A stretch of DNA of 62,962 nt, the filler included, from Platydemus manokwari (Eukaryota): the NCBI GenBank assembly GCA_037951405.1. It is 6 parts of 6 records of this genome, joined end to end, with 100 filler letters (N's around TTAATTAATTAA, not from the genome) between each part and the next. Parts side by side here need not be neighbours in the genome. Positions count along the whole stretch, not along the records: positions 42,948 to 51,714 come from JBBMOY011353204.1; 5 more parts are not named here. One strand, 5' to 3'. Every line of letters starts with the position of its first letter. Position 1 is the first letter of the stretch. The translations under genes and the position numbers were made by a program. The notes beneath the pieces were generated by a model that saw nothing but the letters and a program-made list of their open reading frames with translations, was not told the origin of the DNA and searched no databases. Below are positions 42,301-51,849 of this stretch, piece by piece.

Positions 42301-45300
42301 TTGCTAATCAAAGGAAAAGCCCAAATATTTGTCATGAATCAAACGAGAATTGTAATCTGTTATATTTATTGATGATAATATTAATAAATACCAAACTCTC
42401 ACTGGTAAAAAGTTATGATCGTTGCTGTATTTATAATCAAAGGTCTGTGTGCGTTATTGGGTTAAATTTATAAGTTATTTATATTAAACGAAATATTGTT
42501 GGGTTTGAGTCAGCTGTTAATTTTATATTTTGCTGGACCTAGGGGGCTTCAGCAACTGGTATGATGACCGAGCTGCTGGAAAATAATTTGATTTCAAATT
42601 AATAATTGAGCTATATGTCAGGGGGTTTACCCAACATTTGTATTAGTTTTTCTCCTTCAAATTACAATTTTGATGTGAAGTACTTAACTATACTAAACTC
42701 CAGTTCTAGTGTTGTATGCTGTAATAAGTGTGTAAATAATAATGATTATAAGTTTAATACGGTAAATATATATAATTTTAATAAACATAATTATCTTGTT
42801 TGTATATATATATATACAAACAAGATAATTATGTTTATTAAAATTATNNNNNNNNNNNNNNNNNNNNNNNNNNNNNNNNNNNNNNNNNNNNTTAATTAAT
42901 TAANNNNNNNNNNNNNNNNNNNNNNNNNNNNNNNNNNNNNNNNNNNNCTTTTTTTTCCTATTTTATATATATTTTTAAAAAGAATATAAACGACTATTTG
43001 AAATTTAATATCTGAATATTTTTTAAGAACTCTAAAATTTCATCGAATTCCTCAGATATATGTGAAAGTATATTTTTAGTTCGTTGAGATATTTTGTGAA
43101 TGATATGAGTTTTATAAACATCTTTCAAACCAGGATTGAAGTACTTTTGTTTTTAATGGTTTCTTAATTTCTTTATTGTGCTCAATGTTCTTTAGAACAA
43201 TCATGGGATTTTAAACCTACATTATTTTTAAAAGACTTATAAATCTCACATTTGACCGAACTTTGTTCGGGAATAAGTAGTGCTTGATCCATATGTATTT
43301 TGGATCTTTCGTGAGATTTAAAACCTGATCAATTTATAAATATCCTATTATAAATTTTTCATTTAAATTCGCACATTTTTTATAGTATTTTTTTAAATAT
43401 TTTTTAATATTATATATATTGTTATCAATAGTTTCTTGTAATGGTTTTCCGATTTTTATTTCTAAATCTGATTTAGTATTAATAGTTACATTAACAATAG
43501 ATACATGCTATTATTTATCAATCAGTATATTAAACTCTAACATGTAATTATTTCTAACTAATGAGGTTATAGATTTTAAAATACTCGCTCCCATTTGATT
43601 GGTCAATTTGTACAATCTCTGAACACCTACACAGTTTAAGAAAATAGTTGGTTAGGGTTCAATAGAATGCCAATCTTTCGGAAAAATACTATTTTTTAAT
43701 AATTTGTAACATATCTGTATTATTTTTTATCAACGAATTCTCGTTTCGATTATGGTTTACCTCACTATTTACGTGGGTTATCGAATAAGATTTTTTTAAA
43801 TGAATTTTGATGAAAAATCCATCAGTTCATATATTAATTAAATAAATGTCATTAATAATTAAGTGCAAATAAAATCAATAATAAAAAATCAATAGAAATA
43901 ATTTCCAGTCAATAGCACGATGATATGCATTGATCTGGCAACAACAGTGAATTAAAAGCACTCATTAAACTATTTTCCATCGATTTGGAACTCATCTTAA
44001 ATTATAAATATAAAGAAATAACAAGAGGTTGCTGCCAATCTACTTATATGCTGAAAGTAGTAAATTTACATGAGTGAAAACATATCAAAAGTTCATTGCT
44101 ATGGTCATTATCGTGATTTAGGCTCATTTACTATAATTAGCTATTATTAAAACCAATTCGTTCGACAATTGAATCTTCTATCTTAGTACACTTGAGAATA
44201 AAACAGTGATCAGTATATTCGAAATAATGTGAATGGCAATGAAATATTATTTTATACAATTGTAGCGTTAGGTATTAAGCATCTCATAATAAATTTTTTT
44301 ATTAAATTTAACAATGTTAGTAGAGTGCTGCTGTGTAAATTATGAATATCGATCTTAATCAGCTATAATCGAGCAATAGAAAATTGTCATGAAGCTCTTA
44401 TGTTGCCTGAGAAGAAATAAATTTACGATTTTGATGATTGAGTTGAAGTACAATTGAGGTCACAGCTTAATTTGAATTGAGTATTATATATAAGACATTT
44501 GCGTTACCTTTGTGTAACAATCATTGAAGTAAAACTAGTAAAAATATTCACAAAATTATGCAATAACACGATCTGAACACAGTTCAGTAATTGCTGTTAA
44601 TCAATACCAAGACTGGCAAATGGAGTTATTATATTTCTATATCAGATTCTAATTTTATAAGTAGCATCTATTAAACTCATTCAGTACAATCATCTTGTTT
44701 AAACAACAGTTGTTGATTTGAATCTGTTAAATTTGAATTTGATGCTGTGCCGGATATGTGATATCTATTACAACATCTGACTTGAAGTGTGAAGGATATT
44801 TCATGATAGAGAGAAATTGAAGTCAGAGATAAATAAATAAATAATTGAATCTGCTAGATTTTTAAACCGTTTATAGTGCATTTGCTTATTTGGAATGAAA
44901 ACCCGATTACAGCTGGTGCACATGACCAAGTATTAACTTATAACAAATTAAAATAAAATGATGGTGAATTCAAATCCAGTGATCAGTGTATTGTAAAATG
45001 GTGAATTGTATTATTAATCAATACCAATAGCTACAAACAATATTAGATATTTACTGACTCTAATTATCTAAAATTGTAAACGTTTATCAATATTTGTGCT
45101 CTGTAGACATAATCGTCAACTTTTCACACTCAAAATCACACGCACAAAATCACTGAGTCACAAGGTCAATAATCAGTTCATAACTGAATCACAATTCGAA
45201 AGATAAAACAGCCACAGAAATTACCGACCACTCAATACTAGTTGTCAGAATTATTACATGCTTCCTTGTAACCGACAAAATTCTAGCCTATTTATATGTT

Positions 45301-45981
45301 TACTGATGTCTCCCATGTCATTGGAATATCTAAATATTAGTAACTTGTTTTCAGTGTGTGCAAAAATGAAGATAGAATTGCATTTATTGATTGATATTCT
45401 GGAGGCATCTGAATGGATACTGGTAGATGGGTTCATCATGCCTGTGTTTATCAACCCATTGAGAGTTAGTTCATGGCCTTTATAGGTATTTTGATCAACT
45501 TTGTCACATACATCACAAGATTAACAAATAAATCTAATAGTGACGAAATTCCCAATTCAAACATAATTCACTGAATAAGCTACATTTTTTAAATAAATTG
45601 TGATATGGAAAAAATATTTCAAGATATCTATTAAGGAAAATGATTTTTTAGGAATAATAATGAAGTAAAATGAAGAGATTGCAAAAATATTATGAACATC
45701 ACCACATCTGATATAACAACAAATGTTTTCAAAATTAGGTTTGTTTATGATGAGATGATTTCTTACATAAAAGTTAATAATTAAAATAAATGTGAAAAAG
45801 ATTTACAAAAATACTTTTATTTTCAGATAATTTATTGATTTTTATATTTCAATATATTTGTTAATAATTATTACTGTTATTGATTACAAACCAGATATTG
45901 ATATCATTATATATTTATAATTATTCTATAAAAATCAATCAGAGGAATCAATATTTTTTAAATGAAATTATTGAAGAACAA

Positions 45982-47726
45982 TTAATCCATTTCATTCAGA
46001 GACGTTTGATGAATAAGATTTGTAAATATTTCTTCAGGAAAATCATTTCCAAAATTGTTTTTAAATTTCTCAATCATATCCAATATTTTATTGAAGTTTT
46101 CTTTCGTCGTATTGTGATAAACCTGTGGCAAATTTAATTGATCGTAAATCTCTTTTACTAATTCGGCACTTGCATCATCTGGTTTGCCATAGTTTTCCTT
46201 TAATAATGAGATAAATATATGAATAGATTAAAACAAACATTAAAGTAGAATAAGAAATAAAGTACAGTATTTATTGATTTTACTGATCTTGTAAATGAAT
46301 TACGAAGTGGATGACTTGTTAACATATTTAATATGGATGATGACAAATATAAAGACGAAACATATTATCTACATATTCGGTAAGTCCAGAGCTCCATTAA
46401 AAAAAGCTCGCAGAGTTTTTACAGCATATAGCATATTATTCTTTTAAGGTAATAAATATTCATTCACAATCCCATTTATTTATAACATAAAATAATATAT
46501 TAATATAATACACTATAAGTCACACATATTAATCGATAAAATCAAATATAATCACATTATTTACTTTCAATTGTAATTTCTGTGAATCATTGGAGTATTT
46601 CAGAGCTTGTACAATGAGCCAGCTACATTTACCATTTTTTATATCATTATAATAATCTTCAACAATGTATATATCTCGATAACAATCTAGATAATCATCC
46701 TGAATAAACCATAATATCAATATATTTCATAAAATATCCCATCAGGATACAGAATCCGATAATTTATTTAATTGATCCCGATAAATATTTATTTTTTTGT
46801 TTTAAATGATAACAATAATATTATTTTCTGAAATCTGGGTTTTATCGCTTTTATAAGAATAATTGTAAAAAATATTAAATGAGTTATTTAAATATAATTT
46901 TGTACTCGAATTTGAAAGCATTTGCCCAGCTCGTTACAGATGTTCTCGATTTCTCTGAACATTTTCTCATCAGACTTTCCCGCCTATCGAAAGTCAATTA
47001 ATTCAATATTACACACCATTGATTCAAACCATGATAAAAACACTGAAAATAGGTACACAAAACTCAATAAAAGATACTTTCCATTTCCCGTTCATTTCGA
47101 ATCGACTTTCCGTAAAGCTATCCCAATCGATTCGATCACATGAAGTTAACATGTCTGAACATTGTCCTACGCAAGTTTTATAAATTGCCTCATTAAATAA
47201 CTCGATAAATTCTATATAATAAGATGTTGATTTGAAATATCGTTTCAAGATTCTCGCAATGATTATGCTCAGATATAAACCATCATTGATACCTATTAAA
47301 CCATATCCTTTATCACGACTTAGCAGGTATCAACATGGTTTATTTCGTCTTAGTGTCGAATTATCCATCATATCATCCAATAAGCACATTCCAGCTTTTG
47401 TCTACAACTCAATATTAAATGATAATTTTTACGAAATATAATTCAACGATTTCAATGCAACATCCAATGACATGCAATAATTTCATTTTCTCCTCATTGT
47501 AATCACAATTCATCAATTGTTTGAACGAATTCACAACAGATTTGATGCATTTCCCATCAAGATCACATATCGTGTATTTACACATCTATGAGATGATTGA
47601 AACATGATGATAAATATATTCTCATTTAAAACTCACCTCATCAAGATACTTGAAAGTATTCGACATTTCGATATCTTTATTCTCATGAAGAAAGCTCAAT
47701 ATTTCTTTAAAAGTATTTTCTAACAT
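45982..47726 (-). pseudogene. Divergent FPPS-like (trans-isoprenyl diphosphate synthase fold) gene, 6 exons, 342 codons, with one in-frame TGA; pseudogene, null allele or sequencing error
   Basis: Exons are 47726-47637, 47585-47448, 47401-47030, 46983-46906, 46699-46565 and 46197-45982, all separated by phase-0 GT-AG introns. Motifs: IGCCIEI|TKAGMCLLDDMMDNSTLRRNKPC*Y, GINDG, GQCSD, LGKCFQIR|DDYLD, DIKNGKCSWLIVQAL and ENYGK...VKEIYDQLNL. The TGA at 47332-47330 replaces the Trp of the conserved CWY motif. Confidence 0.88.
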
Positions 47727-49679
47727 AGTAATAGATGTCGAAAGATAATTTATTAATATGATTTATATTGAGATAAAACCAGCTGATTGGTATATATAGA
47801 TCATTTAAGGCATAAAGTCGTCAAGGAAGTTGTGATTATTTTCATTAATACAACATATTTAAGATAAAATTATTAATTTTGTTTTAATGCGTAGAAAATG
47901 ACCCAATTAAAAACCAAGTTAATTTATCTTCTAATCACCCGATAATATTGATCTTATTATAATATATGGACAGAAATAATAAAATATCACTCGGTTTTGT
48001 TTTTCTTAAACTACATGATCATTATTTCGATATACGTCTTTATCAAGATATAAACAAGGAATCGTCTTGAAACGAGAATAAACAGAATAATTCTATGTAA
48101 GTATTAGACATACATTTGTTACCGGTTCAAAAAGCTCTGAAAAAATACCGAATGGTCTGTCAGTTTATTGGAGAAATTTAATTAAATCAATACTTGTTAC
48201 AACCATAAATAAAAATCAATATTGTCAACAATAATTGGTCTTCTAGATCTTATTTGATATCTCTTTACCTCTCAGATCTAGCGACATGTATGAGGATTGC
48301 ATTTATAACAGTATGAACCCATGTCGATGATAAAAAAATAAAACTTTGAAAACTATTTGAAATGTCTCAATGCCAGTCCTCATTGTTCAATATTTAAAGT
48401 CCAATGAGAAATTTGGAGTTCAATCTAATCCCAGTACAAGCGACTAAACAGTAATCAGAAGAGATTTAAAAATTTGAACTTTGTTTCCAGCTGATAACAA
48501 ATCTGGTCATCGTTATCGTTTTGGTATTTATTATAGAACAAAACACGCTCTCTAAAATACACGGCAAAAAGTGCGGACATAAGTGATATAAAATTTTTTT
48601 CAAACTCAGATAACAAATCATATAATAAACATAATGAATATCATGGGTATCGTATGAATTGTTTATAATAATTATAAACATTGATGGCTTCTTAATTGGT
48701 ATGAACATTTATTTTTAACATATGAATATATCTATAGTTGAATGATCTTTATGTAATAATAAAAAGATGTTCTTCAGACCTTTTCGAATTTTTTTTCTAG
48801 AATTCGCAAAACGTTTTATAGGTTTTTGCTTGAAAGATTCAGCAATTCAATTTGTTGAAAGATTTATCGGTGGAAAGATAATTACTCGCAATATTATCAA
48901 TTAGACAAATTGAGAAGAACTATATATTTATGTGTGTGTATCTATGTTCATAACTATTGACCTATATTCTGGACAGGGAATATTAACATGTGCCCATAAA
49001 TTCTTAATTACATTCTGTTCTCAATTACAAATATGTTTTTGTCATAATCTGACTGTCCAATTGCTGCAAAACTCGATTATTCCATTGTGTTCCGGGTGCA
49101 ATTTATTCTTTTTTCTTTCGTATCGATCATTGTTGCAATCTTTGGTTCATTCTTAGTTATCATTGTGTTCGTGTGTTCTCATTCACCACACGGTAAAATT
49201 CATTGAAAAATCACATTCGTTTATCTTATAATATCCGCCGAAACCTTTGGGCAGCCTGTACATATAGCGTTGAAATGAAAAAAAACATTCCATTCAAGTG
49301 GCAATATTATTTTATAATAAATCATACTGTTTCAACTTGATGTGAAATAAATATCAATTACTGCATTAAAATATAGCATTGACCTTAATATAAGACAACT
49401 CCCATTTTCATACTGAAAGTAAATCATTCCATAACGACCTGGTTTAAGAACGACGTTTAAATATGCGATATAAGCAAAAGGCACATTAAGATTGAATGGA
49501 AAAAGTAAAGTTTTATATTCAGGGTATCATAATAAATAATCACGGCTTTTTAAACAAATACATATCGGCGCACTTGGCTATTCTTGTTAAATTTTAGCAT
49601 TGGTCACTTTTTCTACCAAATTATATAATAAAATATATTCATAAAACAACTTCATGTCAAGTATAAGTAAAAAATTTTA

Positions 49680-51380
49680 TTATATACGAAACAAATTCGC
49701 AATACGATCAGAAAGACTTTCTTTATCCATGCTTTGAAATATCAATTGCAATTTTCTACCATCAATGTATCTTGCATACCTCTTTATCGTCATTTTATAT
49801 GTATGCAAAAACTCATGGTCAAGTTCATTGTTGTTTTCCAATATGTTCTTCGAATTTTTAACATAAAATTCAAATCTCTTCAAAATATCTTGGCATGTAC
49901 TGTATTCAAAATCCTTATCAAACTTACTTCGAAAACAAATTTTCTGAATTTGTTCTTCTAGTTTGTTACATGTTCGAACCATTCCCTGAAAATAATCCAT
50001 ATCCCCCACCAGCCGATCTAACAAATCGAAAGAGTTTTCAAATGCCGCATTTGATTGATAGAATAGTGTAATCTTTTTGGTAAAATATTTATAACATTCA
50101 AATCTGATGGATTCATAGGCAGCATGGTATTCGGATTGGAAGTTGGTAATTGCCGACGAATTAAAACTCGCTCTCAATCGATCAATATGCATTTCGAATG
50201 TCAATCGGATAGATCTTAACAACGGGAAATCCCTGCATAAAGGAGTTAACAGACTAAAAAATTCTCTAAATGTTTTAGAAGGTAAAATAATCTTTTTGAT
50301 ATTGTTCATGGTATAATCGATGATTTCGTTTATTAAATTTTTCTCGAGTATGGGAAATCTTTGAATCATGTAATCCATGATTCCAATCTCTACATTTTCT
50401 GAAATCGCTACCAGTTTATGTTCTTCGTTATCATTATCCATATTATCAAGATTTTCGGTTGAACTATTTGATCGATCAATACAAAAGGGACAACATCCGT
50501 GTGTAATGAAAAAGTTTTCCACGCAATTTAAACATAACTTCTGATCACAAAGAGTAAATTTGGCATAATTTGTAAAGTCGACTTGTTGACCACACATCAA
50601 ACAATTATCTGTTTTGTGTTTTTCGACATTCAATAAAACCTTATTGATTAACTTCGCATCGTCAAATTTAATAGTTATCACCATGGCAACTAAAACAGAT
50701 TGAATTTTTTCCAGATAAGCGAGATCAGATAGAAATCGAATGAGAATTTTTTCAATTACCAATCGATTCAAATTGGTCGAATGTGTCAGAGTGGTGAAGT
50801 AATCGCCAAATATTTGAATCAAATAGACGATTTTACTGAAAATATAGTTCCATTTCGGTACTCCTACAAAAAATGGTTTCAAATTGTGTTGAATTTCGGG
50901 AATATGCCGAAATACAACACGAAGCATTTCCGTCATCCGATTTTGTGGGTAGACATTTTCAAAACAATCACGAAACATTTGGATTTGGATTGGTTGTTTT
51001 TGTGATATCAAGTCAAAAACTCTTTTATGGATTTGAATCAAAAATCGTTTATTGTCGTTGAATAATTCCGACAATTCTTTCAATGGTGACATCCAATGTT
51101 GTTTGATGGTTTTTTCTATCGAATTCTGGTCATATATTATGAGGTCACATTGATATTCAGAAATGGTTCTCACATGGTTGGGTAGATTATTTGTTTCAGC
51201 CAAAAACAAATCGGTCACACGGGAAACATCGATATTATCAAGTGGGCATGACATTGGATTCTTGTAATTAATAGCAATAACACAACTCCGACAAAAACAA
51301 TGATTACAATCTCCAAATGTCACAATGATTTCATTGTTCAAAGGATCATAACAAATCGGGCAGTATTCATCGTTATCCAT
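49680..51380 (-). CDS. Intronless 566-aa protein with two RING-HC-like zinc fingers, each followed by a helical region; putative E3 ubiquitin ligase
   Basis: RING1 is CPIC-x14-C-N-H-x2-C-x2-C-x11-CPLD (C3HC3D variant). RING2 is CLMC...CDQKLCLNC...CPFC, with His replaced by Gln. A long uninterrupted ORF is unlikely by chance in DNA this AT-rich. Confidence 0.85.
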   Translation of the reverse strand: MDNDEYCPICYDPLNNEIIVTFGDCNHCFCRSCVIAINYKNPMSCPLDNIDVSRVTDLFLAETNNLPNHVRTISEYQCDLIIYDQNSIEKTIKQHWMSPLKELSELFNDNKRFLIQIHKRVFDLISQKQPIQIQMFRDCFENVYPQNRMTEMLRVVFRHIPEIQHNLKPFFVGVPKWNYIFSKIVYLIQIFGDYFTTLTHSTNLNRLVIEKILIRFLSDLAYLEKIQSVLVAMVITIKFDDAKLINKVLLNVEKHKTDNCLMCGQQVDFTNYAKFTLCDQKLCLNCVENFFITHGCCPFCIDRSNSSTENLDNMDNDNEEHKLVAISENVEIGIMDYMIQRFPILEKNLINEIIDYTMNNIKKIILPSKTFREFFSLLTPLCRDFPLLRSIRLTFEMHIDRLRASFNSSAITNFQSEYHAAYESIRFECYKYFTKKITLFYQSNAAFENSFDLLDRLVGDMDYFQGMVRTCNKLEEQIQKICFRSKFDKDFEYSTCQDILKRFEFYVKNSKNILENNNELDHEFLHTYKMTIKRYARYIDGRKLQLIFQSMDKESLSDRIANLFRI

Positions 51381-51849
51381 TTTTTGAAAATTAATATTTA
51401 AAAGAACGTAATTCTAACAAATTATTTGTTATAAAATTAATTTTTTTTTAAATGTCATAATTTTAAAAGTATATTTTTAATATTTAAGTTATAATTTTAA
51501 ATTTATTTTATTAATAAATTTGCTGGTACAATATATTTTTATTATAAATATTTGAGGTCTATAGAATTTAAATTTTAATAATCTAAATAAAATAAATAAT
51601 TTTAAAATATTTATAATTTTGATTAATTAAATTATTAATTTAAATAAACAAATGATACTTTTACATTAACTTTATTATTTTTAATTTTCAAGTTCTTTAG
51701 AATTTTATAATTCANNNNNNNNNNNNNNNNNNNNNNNNNNNNNNNNNNNNNNNNNNNNTTAATTAATTAANNNNNNNNNNNNNNNNNNNNNNNNNNNNNN
51801 NNNNNNNNNNNNNNAGAAATGCGCGAAGCTGGATCCACCCCACCTCCTT

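Follow-up and report, generated by a model that had tools for sequence, protein, structure and literature searches.

The Platydemus manokwari DNA analysed here (the window; 62,962 nucleotides, consisting of six parts of six records of assembly GCA_037951405.1 with 100 filler letters between each part and the next) contains a genuine spliced gene derived from farnesyl diphosphate synthase (FPPS) and of flatworm affinity. The gene lies on the minus strand at positions 45982-47726, within the part from JBBMOY011353204.1 (42948-51714). Its predicted protein keeps the metal and allylic-diphosphate motifs of FPPS, while most of the conserved residues that contact isopentenyl diphosphate (IPP) or set chain length are replaced. 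In the reading that we tentatively favour as plausible, this gene belongs to a young, multicopy family derived from FPPS that would no longer condense IPP; the present copy is broken or mis-called, and it is a candidate terpene synthase of the type descended from isoprenyl diphosphate synthases (IDSs). The gene is a flatworm-lineage FPPS derivative, its IPP site is remodelled as in the IDS-type terpene synthases of insects, and the multicopy family to which it belongs shows signs of constraint; the terpene synthase interpretation is partly supported. Conversion of FPPS to terpene synthase has been documented for several insect orders and fungi; in the searchable literature we found no report of an FPPS-derived terpene synthase in flatworms or any other non-arthropod animal.

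A spliced FPPS-derived gene of the flatworm lineage

A six-exon model gave exactly the span and the 342-residue length that had been proposed in an earlier, sequence-only reading of this DNA. The model comprises 342 codons and a TAA, with all six exons in phase 0 and all introns GT-AG (51, 46, 46, 206, and 367 bp); the surrounding piece (42948-51714) is 22-33% G+C. Exon 1 (47637-47726) encodes residues 1-30, which form the N-terminal helix and align with the FPPS N terminus; no in-frame ATG was found upstream. Exon 2 (47448-47585, residues 31-76) contains the remodelled first IPP-binding motif (IBM-1), CDLDGKCIKS, at 47538-47567 and ends in IGCCIEI. Exon 3 (47030-47401, residues 77-200) encodes TKAGMC, the first aspartate-rich motif (FARM) DDMMD (47363-47377), STLRRN, a 3-residue insertion found in flatworms, GQCSD (47153-47167), and KVSFIEF (47060-47080). 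The last letters of exon 4 (46906-46983, residues 201-226) are the FQIR of the second aspartate-rich motif (SARM). Exon 5 (46565-46699, residues 227-271) supplies DDYLD, EDYYND (46643-46660), and KCSW (46619-46630), and exon 6 (45982-46197, residues 272-342 and TAA) includes ENYG and ends in an acidic tail, SLNEMD, instead of the basic (I/L)YKRxK.

The frame holds a single internal stop, compared with 27 and 40 in the other two frames and an average of 30 in shuffles of the same letters. The Pfam family polyprenyl_synt (PF00348) was matched by the exon 3 piece at 29.2 bits and by exon 5 at 35.6 bits (cut-off 27 bits), and the best matches of the gene pieces among solved structures in PDB were avian and human FPPS (E=1e-14). 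The EDYYND loop that follows the second aspartate-rich motif aligns ungapped to the (V/I)GKIGTD of the PDB FPPSs. Exon 2 alone, which holds the IBM-1 region, finds no FPPS in PDB.

We used the 99 residues that follow the stop to search 1.8 billion representative proteins and recovered just two close relatives: P0001 (UniParc UPI000604184B), with 58% identity, and P0002, with 44% identity over the stretch. P0002 comes from a 905-bp ENA metagenome contig (L001) whose introns are located as in the Platydemus gene, at exons 2/3, at exons 3/4, and after FQIQ, the last of these being the end of our exon 4. An alternative exon 2 donor, which would add VELYF, was rejected because the L001 intron sits where the model puts it.

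In maximum-likelihood trees, the Platydemus protein, P0001, and P0002 formed a clade within Metazoa (support 100/99 and 98/94). The trio was sister (99/95) to Taenia asiatica FPPS (A0A0R3W5X9, our P0272) together with Opisthorchis/Clonorchis FPPS (Opisthorchis viverrini OON19655.1 / Clonorchis sinensis, P0131). A 3-residue insertion after the CW of RRxxxCW (47296-47329) is confined to the Platydemus, P0001, P0002, Taenia, and Opisthorchis rows. From the trees and this shared insertion, the gene belongs to the flatworm FPPS lineage, which upholds the earlier proposal of an FPPS-derived gene in a non-insect invertebrate. On the tree position, the host would most likely be a flatworm that falls outside the sampled tapeworms and flukes; the low G+C, the introns of 46-51 bp, and the recovery of a relative from an environmental metagenome would suit a free-living flatworm. 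The terminal branch of the Platydemus protein is long, at 1.25-1.33 substitutions per site versus 0.33-0.48 for P0001, roughly a three- to fourfold difference.

All flatworm FPPSs in the alignment have a small residue at position -5 of the FARM (A in Taenia, G in Opisthorchis, S in P0001), which together with the 3-residue insertion forms a lineage signature. Judging from this signature, flatworm "FPPS" may already make longer chains.

Other searches widened the set of relatives little. The 99-residue exon piece had no homologue in a protein collection that does not include this organism, an Atlas search gave only generic FPPS fragments, and neither the related-locus search nor the clade DNA pattern DKG[YF]GLI[GA][IV]NDG found relatives in JGI metagenomes. 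A second strongly divergent FPPS-like protein, P0083 (JGI metagenome, 303 residues), sits on a long branch in an unresolved metazoan polytomy; in it, IBM-1 is replaced by SNDYPG, RR and KT are altered to RF and KV, respectively, the SARM has decayed to NDYAD, and the basic tail is lost.

The allylic site is kept and the IPP site is replaced

We scored motifs with published FPPS regular expressions (PMC10108439); FPPS residue numbers follow 1zw5. The FARM DDMMD (residues 85-89) and the SARM FQIRDDYLD (223-231) both fit their expressions, and the expression for IBM-3, [ADS].[KLT]RR[GN], is matched by STLRRN, with the RR at residues 94-95. GQCSD (155-159) and KCSW (250-253) are retained, as is the K of KT in KV (184-185). 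R126, R127, K214, F253, Q254, and D257 are also present, and all ligands of the three-Mg2+/allylic-diphosphate site are kept except one. Thus, the motifs that the sequence-only reading had listed as conserved all stand where it placed them.

The IPP-contacting motifs, in contrast, fail their expressions. IBM-1, GK.[FINV]R[GPT], in which K71 and R74 bind the IPP diphosphate, is replaced by CDLDGKCIKS (residues 37-46), where the ungapped L-D-G-K-C gives K71D and R74C; the shifted register GKCIKS also fails. For IBM-2 (E[LMWY][FIL][HQ]?[ANTV][AFMSY][FS]L), the gene has EITKAGMC, which corresponds to Q110K, F112G, F113M, and L114C and leaves the non-aromatic residues G80 and M81 at -5 and -4 of the FARM. 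IBM-4 (KT[AGI].[FLY]S?[FL]) reads KVSFIEF (T215V, Y218I, and S219E), IBM-5 (K271 in GK.GTD) reads EDYYND (residues 240-245, K271D), and the basic C-terminal tail that forms IBM-6 has become SLNEMD. The replacements of GGKxxR, KT, GKxGTD, and the basic tail are therefore all as first described. Two further changes in that description are present with a different meaning. The canonical SARM expression, [FY]Q[ILV][AQRV]DD.. (PMC10108439), accommodates the R of FQIR, which is ordinary. The G and M at -5 and -4 were listed together; however, G at -5 is ordinary in flatworm FPPS and, on the aligned residues, only the F-to-M change at -4 is special to this gene.

The losses are unevenly spread. Using 89 columns conserved in at least 85% of 31 canonical FPPSs, we found that the gene keeps 6 of the 17 that are IPP-contact or chain-length columns, whereas of the remaining 71 it keeps 46 (Fisher p=0.03). 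For P0001, the IPP-contact and chain-length figure is 14 of 16. Within the regions covered, P0001 and P0002 retain the canonical IPP-binding residues. Specifically, P0001 and Taenia keep GK.NR/GKKMRG, Q110, and L114, while P0001, P0002, and Taenia keep KT..YS, and Taenia keeps GK.GTD and the basic tail, all of which the Platydemus gene has lost. RRN is common to the Platydemus gene, P0001, P0002, and Opisthorchis. The K-to-D, R-to-C, and F-to-G changes lead away from A+T-rich codons, opposite to A+T pressure.

In insects, the change of an IDS into a terpene synthase is tied to loss of IPP binding with the ionisation site kept; terpene synthases are predicted from substitutions at those IBM residues that contact IPP, the predicted ones averaging at least 3 altered IBMs, and K71D has been noted in beetle terpene synthases (PMC10108439). 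For MhTPS of the harlequin bug, non-aromatic residues at -4/-5 and loss of KKxR are tied to terpene synthase activity, and the premise of the sequence-only reading, that insect terpene synthases derived from FPPS lose IPP-binding and chain-length residues and keep the DDxxD motifs, holds in the literature (PMC6140472). Three sequence features of IDS-type terpene synthases are found in the Platydemus gene: IDS descent with FARM and SARM retained, altered IPP-contacting motifs (IBM-1, 2, 4, and 5), and non-aromatic residues (G, M) at -5/-4.

With IPP binding predicted to be lost and the ionisation site retained, that of a terpene synthase or a related lyase would be the most likely activity of intact members. 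Intact members of the family would still ionise an allylic prenyl diphosphate through the retained metal/allylic site. IPP would not be held for condensation, as the basic clamp on its diphosphate (K71, R74, K271, and the C-terminal R/K) is predicted to be gone; the contacts to the IPP tail (Q110, L114, T215, Y218, and S219) would be lost too, and several IPP-site residues are replaced by acidic ones. The carbocation would then be quenched or cyclised, as in IDS-type terpene synthases or prenyl-diphosphate lyases. The likeliest activity of intact members would be ionisation of geranyl, farnesyl, or geranylgeranyl diphosphate (GPP, FPP, or GGPP) without condensation.

A quite improbable alternative is that the protein is still a prenyltransferase, with an altered product length or irregular coupling, that accommodates a second diphosphate (IPP or dimethylallyl diphosphate, DMAPP) in a reshaped pocket. 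Models for such an enzyme are the FPPS-derived chrysanthemyl/lavandulyl-type enzymes and the longer-chain avian F112/F113 mutants. The chain pocket is made larger by the G and M at -5/-4, and MhFPPS acquired GGPPS activity when its FF was replaced by MS (PMC6140472); R126, R127, F253, Q254, and D257 are kept, CDLDGKCIKS still has a GK displaced downstream by two residues that a shift of the loop could bring into use, and the PDB matches include 4kk2, a chimera of FPPS-derived irregular monoterpene synthase. However, four basic contacts to the second diphosphate are lost or acidic (the tail and residues K71D, R74C, and K271D), none of the prenyl-tail contacts T215, Y218, and S219 survives, and flatworm FPPS ancestrally has the G at -5, which is hence no evidence of a new chain length. 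Altered chain length, which the sequence-only reading had offered beside terpene synthesis, is thus less likely than loss of IPP use, since the basic residues for the IPP diphosphate are gone.

The same substitutions could also mark a catalytically dead partner that heterodimerises with canonical FPPS and modulates it, like the small subunits of heteromeric GPP synthases. FPPS is a homodimer and paralogues can co-assemble; K271D may abolish catalysis, and the copy number exceeds one. We nevertheless regard this as very improbable, as both DDxxD motifs are strictly conserved along with the other residues of the allylic site, whereas the non-catalytic small subunits that are known do not keep such residues.

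Copies, selection, and the premature stop

The locus was present in a single public run (X1), with 75% of sampled words found, and X1 contigs match the flanks exactly. Over exons 1-5, X1 contig depth was 36-103 versus about 14 in the flanks, and the contigs were 81-95% alike. In one contig, intron 4 was largely replaced and the exons were conserved. The depth and divergence of these contigs point to several paralogues that arose at different times. Depth was roughly single-copy (10-26) over exon 6 and intron 5 (window 45936-46637 versus 46638-47690). Intron 5 thus seems to contain the end of the repeated unit; some duplicates could be partial, or gene conversion could have been confined to exons 1-5.

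The internal stop is a TGA at 47330-47332 (minus strand), codon 100, at the conserved Trp of RRxxPCW(Y/H) in the context RRNKPC*Y; it is the codon that the sequence-only reading had wished to repair to Trp. One G-to-A transition converts TGG to TGA. All three X1 contigs that cover plus-strand position 47330 read C, giving TGG, and P0001 and P0002 have W at the codon-100 position. The three contigs are not the window's own allele, as each differs at a neighbouring synonymous site. Because the TGG contigs derive from other alleles and contigs drop minor variants, the TGA of the window is neither confirmed nor excluded. As assembled, the window copy is a null allele, a pseudogene of very recent origin, or the product of an error in the consensus. 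We rejected a sense reading of TGA, as in-frame TGA is absent from a neighbouring 566-codon open reading frame (ORF) and from the other 341 codons of the gene. The spliceosomal introns of this FPPS-derived gene mean that the flatworm mitochondrial code does not apply.

The region between the stop and the start of exon 3 is poorly represented in the run. Positions 47336-47400, coding TKAGMCLLDDMMDNSTLRRNKP, are covered only by a divergent 220-nt X1 contig (depth 9), and a depth-24 X1 contig skips from 47335 to 47401. The stretch up to and including the first aspartate-rich motif seems to be the most variable among the copies, or is missing from the X1 contigs.

We compared the exons of the copies. 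Among the 40 of 132 differences that were listed, 33 fell in exons, comprising 17 synonymous and 16 non-synonymous changes; over 186 synonymous and 840 non-synonymous sites, this gives a ratio of non-synonymous to synonymous polymorphism (pN/pS) of about 0.2, a crude value that pools differences over contigs. In a neutral simulation to 55% amino-acid divergence, about 18 stops arose, and one stop or none was seen in 0 of 300 runs. Since about 18 stops are expected under drift and one is seen, the frame has been under selection for nearly all its history. The sequence-only reading had named dN/dS near 1 as the mark of neutral decay; the listed differences instead give a low ratio, and similar copies read TGG.

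These data bear on the possibility that redundant FPPS duplicates are simply drifting to pseudogenes, with the IPP-site changes as the first functional losses and no new activity gained. Decay of this kind would account for the stop in the window copy and another in a similar contig, for the changes at 25 of 71 otherwise conserved columns, and for two weak splice donors. It also fits the near single-copy depth of exon 6 and intron 5 beside multicopy exons 1-5, from which some copies are perhaps partial. But although the branch is about 1.3 substitutions per site long, the 342 codons are free of frameshifts and hold a single stop, a stop count as low as the simulation never reached, and pN/pS is low among the listed differences between copies. 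In addition, all Mg2+ ligands, R126, K214, GQxxD, and KCSW are kept, the losses are concentrated at IPP contacts rather than evenly spread, and the Trp is intact in three contigs. We therefore judge decay without a new activity to be rather unlikely, though it deserves serious weight.

Several observations weigh against our favoured reading, in which the family has ceased to condense IPP and is a candidate for IDS-type terpene synthesis. The window copy is interrupted at codon 100, and the 220-nt contig, when rebuilt from the listed edits, reads TKS*MCLHDDIMD and thus seems to be a second interrupted copy. At 47330 and throughout 47336-47400, the window's own letters occur in no X1 contig. Introns 2 and 3 have weak donors, with T at +3 (GTTGAA at 47442-47447 and GTTTGA at 47024-47029, both minus strand); the same donors in the relative L001 are GTAATA and GTAAGC. 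The low pN/pS is subject to the pooling noted above. As G at -5 is common to flatworm FPPS, the non-aromatic residues at -4/-5 are a weakened sign of a terpene synthase. K271 (K257 in mature human numbering) contacts the allylic diphosphate too, so the K-to-D change may cripple ionisation as well. We know of no terpenoids reported from flatworms, and a narrow literature search returned nothing relevant. Finally, the motif rules were derived from insects, and their authors warn against applying them to a single sequence (PMC10108439). The terpene synthase proposal of the sequence-only reading is accordingly borne out in its motif pattern, as IBM-1, 2, 4, and 5 fail while FARM, SARM, and IBM-3 pass, but not in the integrity of the gene, as the window copy is interrupted and a second contig carries a stop.

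The wider claim that duplicates of FPPS were independently recruited in flatworms to form IDS-type terpene synthases, as a small family that is diversifying, is doubtful on present evidence. If such a family is real, it would be the first outside arthropods and fungi, and Platyhelminthes would then have a terpene chemistry of their own, serving defence or signalling. If intact members are active, they would represent another independent origin of animal terpene synthesis, would point to hitherto unknown flatworm metabolites, and would offer a natural test of which IPP-site substitutions suffice for the switch. If the family consists of nothing but duplicates in decay, the locus is a commonplace pseudogene.

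Comparison with known enzymes

Like the insect IDS-type terpene synthases MhTPS (Murgantia histrionica) and PsTPS1 (Phyllotreta striolata), the Platydemus gene descends from FPPS and retains the FARM and SARM. In the insect enzymes and in this gene alike, KKxR/IBM-1 is destroyed, IBM-2, 4, and 5 are changed, the residues at -4/-5 are non-aromatic, and the basic tail is lost; K71D is common to the gene and the beetle enzymes. The origins are independent, as the gene lies in the flatworm clade and outside the insect clade (99-100% support). They differ in that R127 is kept here and is R127Y in beetle terpene synthases, and in that IBM-1 of the gene has no inserted aromatic residue. Moreover, the Platydemus copy is interrupted.

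Canonical FPPSs (avian 1FPS and human 1ZW5) have the same fold family, Mg2+ ligands, and length as the gene product. The gene departs from them in having 11 of 17 conserved IPP-contact and chain-length columns replaced and in lacking, through the TGA at codon 100, their uninterrupted reading frame.

Recruitment of IDSs to terpene synthesis has also been described for termites, in GGPPS-derived terpene synthases (PMC13143122), and for fungi, in IDS-like terpene synthases (PMC7484799). The termite and fungal cases, and likewise the FPPS-derived irregular monoterpene synthases of plants (PDB 4kk2), follow the same route, in which duplication of a trans-IDS is followed by loss or alteration of second-substrate handling. 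They differ from the Platydemus gene in parent enzyme or kingdom, and none of them comes from Platyhelminthes.

Neighbouring features

The intronless 566-codon ORF occupies 49680-51380 on the minus strand and encodes a protein with a RING finger at its N terminus (Pfam zf-RING_2, E=1e-8, matched in two stretches). This protein had no homologue among 5.8 billion clustered proteins, and its nearest language-model neighbours were giant-virus RING proteins with low scores, probably a composition effect. Neither this RING protein nor P0001 has an encoding contig on record. Pfam gave no match for the neighbouring ORF fragments; Rfam, tandem-repeat, and repeat scans of the piece 42948-51714 returned nothing relevant, and no repeat family was found within it. 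Downstream of the FPPS-derived gene, X1 contig depth shows two short peaks, at 45117-45233 (57) and 45819-45935 (49), against about 15 around them, which suggests small dispersed repeats.
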